Assembly: GCA_977030845.1 (NCBI GenBank) | Contig: OZ365110.1 | Coordinates: forward strand, 41,974,001-42,038,000 | Reading direction: 5' to 3' | Length of the DNA: 64,000 bases | DNA from: Fimbriosthenelais zetlandica | Taxonomy: Eukaryota | Shown: positions 3,501-61,617 of the stretch, piece by piece | Position numbering within the stretch: the stretch's first letter is position 1 | Layout: each line of letters begins with the position of its first letter | Notes under the pieces: generated by a model | Told to the model about the DNA's origin: nothing | Databases searched by the model: none | What the model saw: only the letters and a program-made list of their open reading frames with translations | Made by a program: the position numbers and the translations under genes

Positions 3501-5354
3501 TCTATGTCAAGTCAGAGGGCAATAATCCACATTGCACTTCCACAGTAGGAGTGAGACCAGAATGTGATTCAACAATACTGGTCATGAATGATGGGCTAAC
3601 GGAAGCTAATTGATTCCACAAACAAGAGCTACGTCCAAAACGTCAGCACCCTGCATCAGAACCCTAAGATCATGTGTTAAAAACTTTGTACTAATTTCCG
3701 ATTAATCTTCGTTCGATATCTGCACAAAAGAGCTTTGTTTGACTGTAATTAGAAGCCAAGAGATAAGAGACCAGGGGTCGTCCATCCCTAACAAGCCCTG
3801 CAGGCGCTGATCGATCATGACTTAGCAAATTTAAAAGGCCATTGTCATAGGTGTTGTTTACAACTCTGCGCTTCTATGCTGCAATTTCCATCAACATCCT
3901 CAATTGAGGATGTTTGACTGGTCCTAAATGTTCACCAACTCATGCGGTACATGCCTGAGACCACTTGGTATATTGCTGGATTCAGTTCCTATATATAGGG
4001 ACTGGTTTGTTCATTGTGAGCAAAGTATTGGAGGTATTAAAATTGTACAAATAGATACTAATAGGGATGAATAAAAGTATATACATGTACATGTATGCTA
4101 AACAGTTAACCTGAAAGAAAACGCCAATTTTATAGACTACTAGTCACAAAGGCACTTGCTTTTAACCTTTCCCTATACTACTTAGCATAATAGCAGCGTG
4201 AAAGTTTCTATGAGATTTTGTACATTGTCACTAGTGATATAAATATACCTTATATAATCAAACTAGGCATGTATAACATTAAAGTTCAAAAAGACAATTA
4301 AGAACCCGGAACAGTCATTAACAGAAGTCTGCTTTTTAATATTCAGGGTAAAAATGTGTCGGACTTGGGCTAAAGTAGACCCGCTTGCAATGCGGAGATA
4401 TTTTTAAAGAGGAACTGACTAATTTCTCCTCAAGCAACTTCAGAGGAGACAAGGAGGTAATAAAATCTAATGATAATGATCCTCCTAATGAAAGTTTGAC
4501 TGACAATTTCCATGAATGCATATTAAGACGGGAGGTCAATGAGAGTTTGGGGGATGAAAATTAGTTAGACATTTCAGAGGCTGCCAACACTGTATCCAAA
4601 TCAGAAGAGTCTGAAACTTTGTGCGATAAGAGTCCATTAGAGGAAAGATTTGATTGTCTCATCACACTAGTCTAAATATTTTTGCAATAAATTCAATTAT
4701 CCTGACAGGAATAATCGGCATCAATTTTGAGGTTAAATAAACCATTATGCATTCTAATTCTTCGAAACTTCCTCCAAGGGGCATCGTGCAAATTGGGAGA
4801 TTGGCCATTTGAAAGCTTTGAAAGCAAATCGTTGAAAACTCAACTAACTCTCGTCCCTGTCGGGGGTTATAATTTCCGGTGGGCCATGTCGGCCCTGCTG
4901 AGGAAGGGGCGCACAACAACCTCACCAGAAGGACCTCGCTGTAATTAGCCCTTGTTCTTGATGGCGTCGATGGTAAGACACAACTTCCGGTGTGGGGGAT
5001 TGGGATAATATCGCCTGGCCAGAGGCAAAAGCGCCGAAGGGAACCAACAAATCGTTCCACTTCCTGCGACGTCCTTTCAGGCCCGTTTCCAGCAGTACGC
5101 CCACAAAGAGAGGCAATCAGATGATTGGACTTATATTATTAGGTAAAGCAGCTTTGTCATTATTATCAATTTATCAATTACCCTCCTGAATGGAAATAGG
5201 TGGCCAGATAAGGATATGAGTGATAAGAAAGCAACGTAAAATATAGAAAAAAATATTGGCTAATGAATCGACCACATGTACTTCCTGAATGGAAGCTATT
5301 CTGGACAAATCTCTTTAACCTGAACTAGTTTGATTCTTTAATATAGATCATCAC

Positions 5355-17600: not shown

Positions 17601-20530
17601 TTCACGTGTGAATGTAAGAGGCCTGACCTGTATATATATTAGAGTTTAAGCCACACAATCATGTAACCTAACTAATGCTCTATATTCACAAATGTATGTA
17701 CAACATGGACTAATGTAGTATGTTGGAATAATCATAAAGAAAAATTGTCAAAACCAGGACAAACTATAATAATTGGATTATGGGCATATTAGTCCTCATG
17801 TTAATAGAAATCTGAAGGCTAATTCGCATTCAGCATTTAGGGAGTCAGTTACATGATCAGAAAAAAGTTCTTCAGAGGGCATGGGGAGATTTATGTATAA
17901 TACAATCAATACTTCAATAGGTCCCCAAACCTGTCCAGAGATTATATACAGCCAGAGCATAAGGGTCTGGTAAGCATTGTTAAGGCTATGAGGGGCCGCC
18001 GGAAAACTGGGCAGAGTTAGGACATAAAAGCCAAGCTTTAAATAAGGTTAGGCCACCACAAAGTACAGTGTGCCAGCTTGTTTGTACAGGAAGAGGAGCA
18101 ATAATGAAGGAATATACTTTTTACTGGGAATGTCTAAAGGCATGGTATTAATACTGGTGTATCGCCAGTTGATTAAGGACAGATTGATTATACTGGAGTT
18201 GTTGATACTGAATGATGCTTACACAATGACTGCCAGAGACCACATTAAGTATTTGCAATTATTTGTGTGTTTCAAACACTATCACGTCATTTCATAATCC
18301 CCCTAATCCCTTTTCTATCAGTTGTATAATATAGAAGCAAAACTGGAGGCAGCAATTTTCTTACAAAATTCATGATTTACAGGAAATTTTTCTAATAAAT
18401 TAGAAATTGGAAAGAATCAAGAATTTGGTCATAAGTAACGAACAGAGCAGCTGTTTCTGTTATCTTCTAGACTATTTCATTAATTTCTGTCGGAACTGCA
18501 TAGGTAAATAGCATTTGCAAATGTGTATAATTTCTTATTATAGTTAATCTGTCATTTGATCTGTCAGCCTGAATAACTACAGAATAATTTTCTAAGATGA
18601 TATAACAATGAAGATAGACATAACAAGCTTGTAATTTGGGAAGGCACGCGAAAGATCTGGTTTGGCAAGTTTAGGTGACAAGAAAACAATACGCATGCCT
18701 ATCAGTATTTGTATACGTATACATTTCTAAATTCATTACCTTTACAATTCAAAGAACAATGAACTTATACATGTAGATATACATAATTATTCAGCTACCA
18801 CTTCTAATTTGGAGTAATAAAGGGTAATAAAACCAGCCTGCCCTGGGCAATTCAAACATATCTATGGACATTCATTTTCTTTATAATTAATTATATCCCT
18901 GATTATAGCCCAACATAATACAGACTAGCGACCTTTTAGGTGGGTTACGTCAGGCACATGGCTATTGATCTCCTAGCATGGCAAATGTGGATTGGCAACT
19001 TAGTGGTTGATGATCCCGACCGGTGCCAATACGACGCGCATCCCCTAACCTTCAACAATGCATACATGTAACCCCCAGCACCCTGCTCATGTAACCCTGT
19101 CTATGTAGATAACAGCATGATGTAACTGACTTAATCAACAACACTATCAACCTATCACTTTTCCCTTGCCATAAAAATGTGACCTAATCCTTGTGTCTTT
19201 ATATATGTACGCTGCTGCAGACCTGACGCTGCAACACAATGATGAATGAGTCACGTAACACATTGTGATTCTCTACCAGAATAATGTTCTTCCTACTATG
19301 CTGGTAATCATTCCAGATATCCATGGCAGACAGATATGTAGCAGCTTCCATGGATGTCTAATTTATCGTCTTTCCAAGTTTACAATACACTACATCTGGA
19401 GATGTTTTCTTGTACATGTATAGAGGAGCAAGATAATCCAAATCATCTGCATCTCTCAGCACATCCTTTGATTACACTTGTTTTCCTTTCAACAGGTGGT
19501 GGGTGGGCTTTCATTGCAGGTGGTTGCAGTGTCAGTTACACAGTCCGTGGTAGGCTATTGAAGCATTACCCTCAAGAATCTTGGCCAATATATCTTCCTA
19601 TTCAAGCTTCCTTATAATAGATTAATTTTTGAAGGGGCAGCTGGAGAGGCTGAGAAGAGTTAGTTCAGAATGATGTTTTGCGTGTCCAACATAAGGTCAA
19701 AATAGTTCCACTTGATAGAATATGCGCAAAAAATACTGTCTTATCATGGTCCTCCTTGTGCATCAATCTGGCGAACTCGAGCATAAAAATTCTCTCAGAT
19801 GTCTTCCCTAGAGAAAAGCTGGACTTGGGCAGAAAAAGAGAGGACATGGCATGAGGGGTTCAAGATCTTTGGTTGTGCTGTGGCCTGTCCAATGGTAAAG
19901 ACAGGAACAGGGGGGGTGGCCTTCCAAGCCCTATTAGTTCCATCTGTTATCCCTCCAATGTTGAAATGGAGAGTCACTGATAAGGCATTTAGGGATGAGG
20001 AAGACTCACCAAGTGATAGGTTTACTTTCATTCTTTTGTACAAGTATCAATATTCATCATCTGTTTGTGTACATTCTGCCAACATATTCATATATCGCCT
20101 GTTTGGAATGTAGAGCTGTTGATGCTGTAACTTGACTTTAGGTTAACTTGATGTCCATTTGTTAAGCCTGGTCCATGACACTAGCTTGTTTTTTTTCAGC
20201 TATGGTTCACAAGAAGCACGGCTGGACACAGTACAGCAATGATAAACACTATAACAGCACTGCTGACACTCTCGGTTTTAAAACACTAGCTCCTGACACA
20301 TAGAGCTTTCCAACACTTATTTCATTATTCACTGAACATATACAATGTCTTTGATTATTGCAGCAACCAAATCATCGACATGTAACACTGATTAAGGCCA
20401 ATAATCCCTTTAACAGGATCTGACGGACACTGGCATCGCTGATGTCACATTGCGGCCTTGCATGTATGTGACACCTAACAAATTCCATGGTGACCAGCAA
20501 GCGATTGCAAAGCCACCAGACTTGACTAGG

Positions 20531-20544
20531 GTGTGTGTGTGTGT
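20531..20544. repeat. (GT)7 microsatellite in the presumed 3'UTR of isoform B
   Basis: gtgtgtgtgtgtgt read directly. Confidence 0.8.
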
Positions 20545-20653
20545 AAATTCATCAAGAGTAAACACCACTTTCATTCAAGTGGACATAGTTGGGGGCAGTG
20601 ATTTAGATCAACCCGTCACATTTTTTGGTGACTGAGGAGTTTCCCCATGTTGA

Positions 20654-21082
20654 TCAATACATACGTGGTCCATGTGGGGCCCCACTTTTGCTGGTCAGCA
20701 TGGGAGCAGGGGACCTGTTTGGTGGTGGGCCAATAGCAACCAACGTAGGATGCTGAATGACCTGCGCCATAGGATGAGCTTGTATCAACTGATGTGCTGG
20801 TATCATCGGATGATGACCTTGTGGATGATGACCTTGTGGATGATGACCTTGTGGATGATGACCTTGTGAATGATGACCTTGTAAATGATGACCTTGAGCC
20901 ATCGGATGTGCTTGCACAACATGCCCTGTTTGAGTGATCTGTGCATGTTGTGGGCCACCATAAGCGCCACTTGTGTATACAGCCCCACCATATACAGCCC
21001 CATAAACTCCCCCATACTGTCCATGATGTCTTCCCACCATACACCCTACCCGCGATGCCGGCATGCCCGCCGGCCCTACTAG
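20654..21082 (-). CDS. Candidate stop-codon-readthrough extension of exon 11B (142 aa; YGG-, Gln-, His- and Pro-rich low-complexity tail)
   Basis: TAG CTA GTA GGG CCG GCG GGC ATG... is in frame with supplied ORF 20654..21064; 142 sense codons run to TGA at 20656-20654. CTAG follows the stop, and the repeated peptides differ at synonymous positions. Confidence 0.65.
   Translation of the reverse strand, partial: LVGPAGMPASRVGCMVGRHHGQYGGVYGAVYGGAVYTSGAYGGPQHAQITQTGHVVQAHPMAQGHHLQGHHSQGHHPQGHHPQGHHPQGHHPMIPAHQLIQAHPMAQVIQHPTLVAIGPPPNRSPAPMLTSKSGAPHGPRMY
20807..20896 (-). repeat. 15-bp tandem repeat x6 (CAAGGTCATCATCCA) encoding QGHH[L/S/P]
   Basis: Plus strand shows six TGGATGATGACCTTG-like units that differ only in the first 1-3 nt. 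Confidence 0.95.

Positions 21083-61617
<40,535 letters not shown>

Follow-up and report, generated by a model that had tools for sequence, protein, structure and literature searches.

Candidate programmed readthrough of the UAG stop codon in a Src-type kinase gene of Fimbriosthenelais zetlandica

We analysed a 64,000-nucleotide window of the genome of Fimbriosthenelais zetlandica (contig OZ365110.1, positions 41,974,001 to 42,038,000; positions below are counted from the first letter of this window), whose minus strand carries a gene for a Src-type tyrosine kinase with two alternative last coding exons, 11A and 11B. Exon 11B ends in a TAG stop codon that is followed directly by CTAG and by 142 open codons in the frame of the kinase, here called the tail. 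Comparison with two other species indicates that the tail evolves under coding selection, confined to the kinase frame, and synonymous sites around the stop codon are frozen across the same species. We infer both the readthrough itself and a function for the tail: programmed translational readthrough of the UAG that ends exon 11B probably yields an extended Src-type kinase. The locus had been read before, from the letters of the window, as exon 11B, TAG, CTAG, 142 codons with a (QGHHP)6-type repeat and a closing TGA (hereafter the original prediction), and this layout was confirmed on the minus strand.

Coding selection on the open frame behind the kinase stop

The tail peptide was searched against 5.8 billion proteins, and an exhaustive HMMER scan was made of 1.84 billion representatives. 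The search matched two proteins, P0001 (98 amino acids, E 2.4e-37) and P0002 (81 amino acids, E 6.9e-17). The HMMER scan returned the same two orthologous tails together with low-complexity His-rich matches only, and a profile built from the three tails found no members beyond P0001 and P0002. Both proteins are open reading frames (ORFs) situated directly behind the orthologous last kinase exon in genomic contigs of other species. The corresponding loci come from two Logan assemblies (L001 and L002) and from a 4.2-Mb ENA contig (L003), and the tail-bearing comparison set comprises three species (the window species, L001/L002 and L003), with the two other species represented by four contigs in all.

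At every tail locus the ORF is in the kinase frame and its first ATG stands 18 nt past the kinase stop, and TAG-CTAG is identical letter for letter in the window species, L001 and L003. In the window the tail measures 142 codons (426 nt), as against 104 codons (312 nt) in L001 and 87 codons (261 nt) in L003, the length differences of 114 and 165 nt each being a multiple of three.

In a three-way alignment, exon and tail alike display the coding periodicity of two conserved positions and one variable position, and alignability ends at the TGA of the tail. By Nei-Gojobori counts, the proportion of synonymous differences (pS) is saturated in the exon at 0.77-0.92, with a proportion of nonsynonymous differences (pN) of 0.04-0.08; the tail gives a pS of 0.50-0.76 and a pN of 0.11-0.19, an excess of synonymous change with Fisher P values of 5e-12, 2e-18 and 1.5e-10. 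When pN/pS was compared on the same columns in the three frames, frame 0 of the tail gave 0.19-0.29, versus 1.3-3.2 in frame +1 and 1.9-3.0 in frame +2, and frame +2 was rejected as the true frame on this comparison. Both the N-terminal Gly/Tyr block and the C-terminal Pro-rich block keep a single frame across the three species. The alignment of orthologues bore out the original prediction in two respects, a TAG-CTAG that is conserved in two more species and coding-type evolution downstream of it.

The length of the ORF is by itself misleading here, as two frames are open over the tail. Stop-free segments of at least 142 codons are rare in the window (5 of 7282 in the six frames), and both open frames at the tail belong to these five; ORFs with 130 amino acids or more number four in the 64 kb. 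Frame +2 is stop-free for 172 codons (20619-21134, minus strand) and is without stops over the tail in all three species, because the tail is nearly devoid of codons beginning with AA, AG or GA (Asp and Glu are absent, Lys and Asn scarce). This second frame had been attached to the original prediction as a caveat, which the restriction of selection to frame 0 removes. The base composition is also as had been described, the tail being richer in G+C than the DNA after exon 11A (52.3% versus 39.9%); the next 426 nt have 42.0% and the whole window 39.9%.

That the ORF arose in a 3' untranslated region by chance, or as an artefact of composition, might be suspected from the second open frame, which persists in the three species, and from the simple tandem repeat that makes up part of the tail. 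Against such an origin, selection is confined to frame 0 and the conserved parts of the tail lie outside the tandem repeat. A variant of the same explanation, that the TAG is an assembly error or an allele, is not supported, since the TAG is identical in four independent assemblies of the two other species. The alignment and the substitution counts already refute either version, which we regard as vanishingly improbable. Neither AATAAA nor ATTAAA occurs between the kinase stop and the tail stop in any of the three species, and the tail is therefore probably carried on the same mRNA.

Orthologous last exons were sought with the 72-residue exon peptide as query and were recovered from five further lineages, at 63-73% identity. 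Their stop lies six residues past the C-terminal tyrosine in P0008, P0010, P0011 and P0012 and eight residues past it in P0009, and a tail is present in none of the five. The stop contexts in these sister lineages are ordinary, with a second in-frame stop 1 to 10 codons past the first. In L005/L006 the kinase ORF is followed by TGA-T, with the next in-frame stop 5 codons on, and in L007/L008 by TGA-TAA. L010 reads TAG-T with a stop 9 codons on, L011 reads TAG-TGA, and L009 reads TAG-CCC with a stop 10 codons on, its kinase stop falling two codons later than in the others. These contexts indicate that TAG functions as a stop in the relatives. Because the sister lineages stop at the same position and are tailless, the stop is ancestral rather than a nonsense allele of recent date, as had been argued from its distance of six residues to the tyrosine (a distance kept in four of the five sister exons), and the same pattern places the tail and its signal as derived within one clade.

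Nucleotide-level constraint around the stop codon

Fourfold-degenerate sites were counted where the residue is the same in all three species. In codons -1 to +11, eight of ten such sites are invariant, versus 3 of 56 elsewhere (binomial P = 2.8e-09), and TAG-CTAG is unchanged despite the saturation of synonymous sites in the exon. This synonymous-frozen block, with a hairpin 8 nt past the stop, is a signal beyond those of the original prediction. Counting the U of UAG as +1, the hairpin spans +12 to +29, and the in-frame AUG falls partly in its loop and partly in its 3' arm. Of 12,000 random 24-mers drawn from the window, none was as stable. Consensus folding of about 105 nt returned the invariant hairpin as the only solid element, along with a longer stem that has broken pairs and a positive covariation term. 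No pseudoknot partner was seen for the GGCA loop, and an Rfam scan of the window, L001 and L003 matched no family. The sole metagenome match to the 22-nt hairpin block (L004 4310-4331) was set aside: the ORF around it, high in G+C, has no relation to the locus and was read by eye as a bacterial pyruvate kinase, and the match most likely arose by chance.

Under programmed readthrough, most ribosomes would terminate six residues past the regulatory tail tyrosine, and a fraction would decode the UAG with a near-cognate tRNA. At UAG this is most likely a tRNA for Gln, Tyr or Lys. The weak context GUA-UAG-CUAG and the 7-bp G+C hairpin at +12, set off by the 8-nt spacer, would favour the event, with the hairpin standing at the mRNA entry channel while the stop occupies the A site. 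Ribosomes that read through would then continue for 142 codons (104 in L001 and 87 in L003) to the conserved UGA, and the extension so added would have three parts: it would open with a conserved segment rich in Gly and Tyr, pass into a variable linker rich in His, Gln and Pro, and close with a conserved Pro-rich end (...GPRMY).

Several observations weigh against this reading. UAG-CUAG was weaker than UGA-CUAG in the only system in which it has been tested (PMC4132726). When the 83%-G+C 24-mer that holds the hairpin was shuffled, 3.4% of the shuffles folded as stably, and by energy z-score the 63-nt stretch does not differ significantly from its dinucleotide shuffles. The tail is found in three species only, and the hairpin is invariant among them, without covariation. 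Because invariance yields no covariation and shuffles can equal the stability, the case for the hairpin rests on the frozen synonymous sites and on its position. Furthermore, an in-frame AUG with a purine at -3 is conserved 18 nt past the stop, the stop can join an imperfect extended stem, and UAG is also the preferred triplet of the editing enzyme ADAR.

The conserved AUG opens a different account, in which the tail forms a downstream ORF independent of the kinase, 81-136 amino acids long (MPASR...GPRMY). It would be translated from its own start by reinitiation, by leaky or internal initiation, or from a transcript that begins in 11B, and the frozen block would then serve the control of initiation. 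The AUG is conserved in the three species with G at -3, gene callers give the tail as a separate ORF, and the coding-type conservation fits this account as well as it fits readthrough. However, eukaryotic ribosomes reinitiate very inefficiently behind an ORF of ~500 codons unless a special signal helps them, and a conserved UGGGA-type (caliciviral-type) motif before the stop was not found, the relevant bases varying among the three species. The AUG is moreover buried in the -12.6 kcal/mol hairpin, which is expected to hinder initiation, and the upstream DNA is purine-rich coding sequence that lacks the polypyrimidine tract of a trans-splice acceptor. An independent ORF would also leave unexplained the invariance of the CUAG, the 8-nt spacing, the shared frame and the six stop-free codons between the stop and the AUG. 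These six codons lie inside the frozen block and carry two differences (one synonymous, one Gly-to-Arg), which are uninformative either way. On balance we consider independent initiation unlikely.

Adenosine-to-inosine editing would reach the same protein by another route, with ADAR turning UAG into UIG (Trp), ordinary translation producing the extended kinase and the frozen block acting as the double-stranded substrate. UAG is the favoured triplet of this enzyme, and nucleotide-level conservation at the stop is what would be expected of an editing site. In addition, the minimum-energy fold pairs GUAUA, which contains the A of UAG, to UGUAU 40 nt downstream, around the central hairpin, and L001 keeps this pairing through a U-A to U-G change. 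Yet the duplex is short, with interruptions (5 + 3 + 2 + 7 bp), its stability does not significantly exceed that of shuffles, and no conserved complement of greater length is visible, the exon, tail and intron flank being otherwise diverged. Editing also assigns no role to the invariant +4 C or to the exact 8-nt spacer, and we judge it decidedly unlikely.

Finally, splicing might bypass the stop, through a small intron that holds the TAG or through an alternative acceptor just past it. The letters GT...AG are present around the stop, and an acceptor at CTAG|TA would keep frame 0 at the phase-1 junction. However, introns bounded by the GT...AG pairs across the stop would measure only 6, 10, 13 or 43 nt, the 43-nt intron shifts the frame and its AG is missing in L003, and coding-type constraint reaches the stop from both sides. 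The alternative acceptor has no pyrimidine tract, and its use would remove the last 72 residues of the kinase domain. A splicing bypass is thus very improbable.

The tail as a protein and the layout of the gene

Of the five tyrosines in the Gly/Tyr block of the tail, four have Gly after them and three have Val before them, and L003 differs here at nearly all third codon positions with the residues retained. The His-rich (QGHHx)6 repeat is found in the window species only and is absent from L001 and L003. Since it is absent in both other species, the middle of the tail expands and contracts freely, both ends being conserved. A single-sequence AlphaFold2 model of the tail has a mean predicted local distance difference test (pLDDT) score of 49, with residues 11-42 forming three strands at pLDDT 67-78 and the rest below 50. 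The three-stranded beta meander predicted for the Gly/Tyr segment (21082-20954, tail residues 1-43) has a pLDDT that is unexpectedly high for low-complexity sequence modelled without an alignment. The model would fit a Gly/Tyr segment that is small and either structured or self-associating, with a disordered chain behind it, a single-sequence model being weak ground for such an assignment. The large disordered domain of the original prediction is in keeping with most of the tail, and does not extend to the first ~40 residues, where the three strands are predicted with moderate confidence in its best-conserved part.

Pfam placed the tail in no family at E <=1. Look-alikes in the ESM Atlas reached a top score of 0.82, which is within reach of shuffled sequences, and a scan of GTDB genomes with the tail profile gave 51 pattern matches, of which none was confirmed. 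The optimal substrate motif of Src is Ile/Val-Tyr-Gly; the Val-Tyr-Gly repeats of the tail resemble it, which we offer as a lead and not as a result. Placed directly behind the autoinhibitory tail of the kinase, the extension could conceivably alter its regulation or its choice of partners, although this is a guess.

The features of the gene are collected in Table 1. The domain order of SH3, SH2 and tyrosine kinase is that of the Src type, and the exons descend from 59635 to 21086 on the minus strand, with PK_Tyr_Ser-Thr matches at Pfam E values of 1.8e-22, 4.7e-21, 2.1e-17 and 7.6e-07. The first coding exon may lie above 59635 or beyond the window. Read on the minus strand, the acceptor AG of exon 11B occupies 21305-21304 and the exon begins at 21303. 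A C-terminal tyrosine stands shortly before the stop in both 11B and 11A, in 11B six residues ahead of it, and this residue would be the target of a Csk-type kinase. Exon 11A has a further in-frame stop 6 codons after its own.

Table 1. Features of the Src-type kinase gene and its proposed extension, in window positions
Feature	Position	Strand	Basis or remarks
Alternative last coding exon 11B, end of kinase domain and regulatory tail	21086..21303	minus	Sequence, translation, Pfam PF07714 (E 7.6e-07), orthologous exons in L001, L003 and L005-L011
Frozen block: last sense codon, stop, spacer, hairpin and about 12 nt beyond	21041..21088	minus	Invariant synonymous sites
TAG stop, proposed readthrough site	21083..21085	minus	Preceding codon GTA (Val); identical in L001 and L003
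CTAG tetranucleotide, +4 to +7	21079..21082	minus	Invariant in three species
8-nt spacer from stop to hairpin	21075..21082	minus	CUAGUAGG in window, CUAGUGCG in L003
Hairpin GCCGGCG-GGCA-UGCCGGC, 7 bp G+C, tetraloop	21057..21074	minus	Invariant; -12.6 kcal/mol
In-frame ATG 18 nt past stop (start of MPASR...)	21062..21064	minus	Conserved in three species, within hairpin
Tail ORF, 142 in-frame codons	20657..21082	minus	Translation LVGPAGMPASR...GPRMY; homologous ORFs P0001 and P0002
Gly/Tyr-rich conserved block (MPASRVGC...GQYGGVYGAVYGGAVYTSGAYGG)	20954..21064	minus	Alignment; best-conserved part of tail
15-nt tandem repeat encoding (QGHHx)6	20808..20896	minus	5.9 copies, 97% matches
Conserved C-terminal block (PTLVAIGPPPNRSPAPMLTSKSGAPHGPRMY)	20657..20749	minus	Three-species alignment, coding selection counts
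TGA closing the extension	20654..20656	minus	TGA at homologous place in L001 and L003; cross-species similarity ends here
Alternative last exon 11A	32968..33182	minus	Splice phase equal to that of 11B; without extension
Upstream exons, limits approximate	45428..59635	minus	Pfam SH3_1, SH2 and PK_Tyr_Ser-Thr matches
SH3 exons	59635-59483, 58999-58883	minus	Pfam SH3_1, E 2.9e-08 and 1.5e-05
SH2 exons	58317-58189, 58026-57811	minus	Pfam SH2, E 2.2e-05 and 3.6e-10
Linker and G-loop	within 57708-57361	minus	
Kinase exons upstream of 11A/11B	57099-56815, 56445-56281, 45604-45428	minus	

When 45428-59635 is set beside 21083-45428, the 5' half of the gene proves compact: the SH3, SH2 and first kinase exons are crowded into ~3.4 kb (59.6-56.3 kb), and the last three introns measure ~10.7, 12 and 12-24 kb, the range reflecting the choice of terminal exon. 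By eye, no ORFs with recognisable domains were seen in the long introns. Exons 11A and 11B lie 12 kb apart and are diverged versions of one stretch of 70-72 residues with a shared splice phase. The distant relative L005 likewise carries two such exons, ~340 nt apart (4176-4394 and about 4735-4949). The paired last exons recall the alternatively spliced srk1/srk4 transcripts that Ottilie et al. reportedly described in 1992 from a freshwater sponge. Over exon 11A, a stop-free stretch of 145 codons runs in the +1 frame (32742-33176, minus strand) to ~230 nt beyond the stop of the exon; it is among the five longest open stretches of the window and is probably due to chance. A short (CA)n microsatellite follows ~110 nt past the tail stop, at about 20530-20545 on the minus strand, and a comparable CACACA run occupies the matching place in L001, around its positions 2470-2480.

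Comparison with known readthrough systems

Experiments have shown CUAG placed after UGA to drive efficient readthrough in AQP4, OPRK1, OPRL1 and MAPK10 (Loughran et al. 2014, PMC4132726). When the UGA in the OPRL1 context was changed to UAG, readthrough fell only about 3-fold, and GUA stands directly before the stop in AQP4 and, usually, in OPRK1 (PMC4132726), as it does in exon 11B. The kinase gene resembles the vertebrate UGA-CUAG genes (AQP4, OPRK1, OPRL1, MAPK10, MDH1 and VDR; PMC4132726) in the conserved CUAG directly after the stop, in the coding signature of the extension with conservation best toward the C-terminal end, and in the nucleotide conservation just 3' of the stop. It differs from them in its UAG stop, in a proposed extension of 87-142 rather than about 13-30 residues, in the hairpin at +12 and in its invertebrate host.

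A second resemblance is to the gag-pol junction of Moloney murine leukaemia virus, whose pseudoknot begins at +12, behind an 8-nt spacer, spacers of at least 8 nt being typical of stimulatory structures (2026 review, PMC13517186). Both sites have UAG, an 8-nt spacer and, from +12, a structure inside coding sequence whose nucleotides themselves are conserved (PMC13517186). In contrast to the virus, the kinase is a cellular gene with a simple 7-bp tetraloop hairpin, an H-type pseudoknot is not evident, and C rather than the retroviral G is found at +4. Alphaviruses, Colorado tick fever virus and the Drosophila genes hdc and kelch are further cases that, alongside the murine virus, are stimulated by a 3' structure.

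The insect readthrough genes that comparative genomics and ribosome profiling revealed in Drosophila and Anopheles (PMC5100048, PMC13278127) share with the kinase a coding signature past a conserved stop, long and often low-complexity extensions and an enrichment of C at +4, although the host here is not an insect. The end of exon 11B is like the tail of c-Src: in both, an SH3-SH2-kinase body is followed by a tyrosine that precedes the stop by six residues. With the canonical tail the protein is complete, whereas the second isoform proposed here would run 87-142 residues further. Lastly, the amber/W site of hepatitis delta virus also has a UAG that is converted to give a C-terminally extended isoform, and it likewise lies in a base-paired region, but the long duplex is not visible here and the CUAG and the spacer have no role in editing.

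No report of a readthrough isoform of a Src-family kinase was found in the paper library that was searched, in agreement with the original prediction. Readthrough and Src64B were not found together in any paper of that library, and 'Src' is absent from the main text of a 2026 survey of readthrough in Drosophila. The mechanism itself is known, from hundreds of cases in insects and a handful in vertebrates; its use in a Src-family kinase, for which no precedent was found, is a well-supported candidate on comparative evidence.

As to origin, we suggest tentatively that the tail might derive from a former 3' untranslated region in one invertebrate lineage, captured by a new switch composed of UAG-CUAG and the hairpin. 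The outcome could be a regulated second Src isoform, in which the Val-Tyr-Gly substrate-like sites would form a module for phosphorylation, scaffolding or condensation; this scenario is possible rather than likely. Were the host a non-bilaterian, the case would further mark CUAG-type readthrough as a pan-metazoan property of ribosome and release factor, put to use independently. The tailless sister lineages date the origin of the feature. As a clean natural example, the case brings together CUAG and a structure set 8 nt from the stop, the two best-understood stimulators of readthrough, and does so in a cellular gene that belongs to neither vertebrates nor insects. Few signalling enzymes have been studied as much as the Src-family kinases; regulation in the family hinges on the C-terminal tail of the kinase, and a selected continuation of 87-142 residues behind it would, if true, be a new route of diversification.

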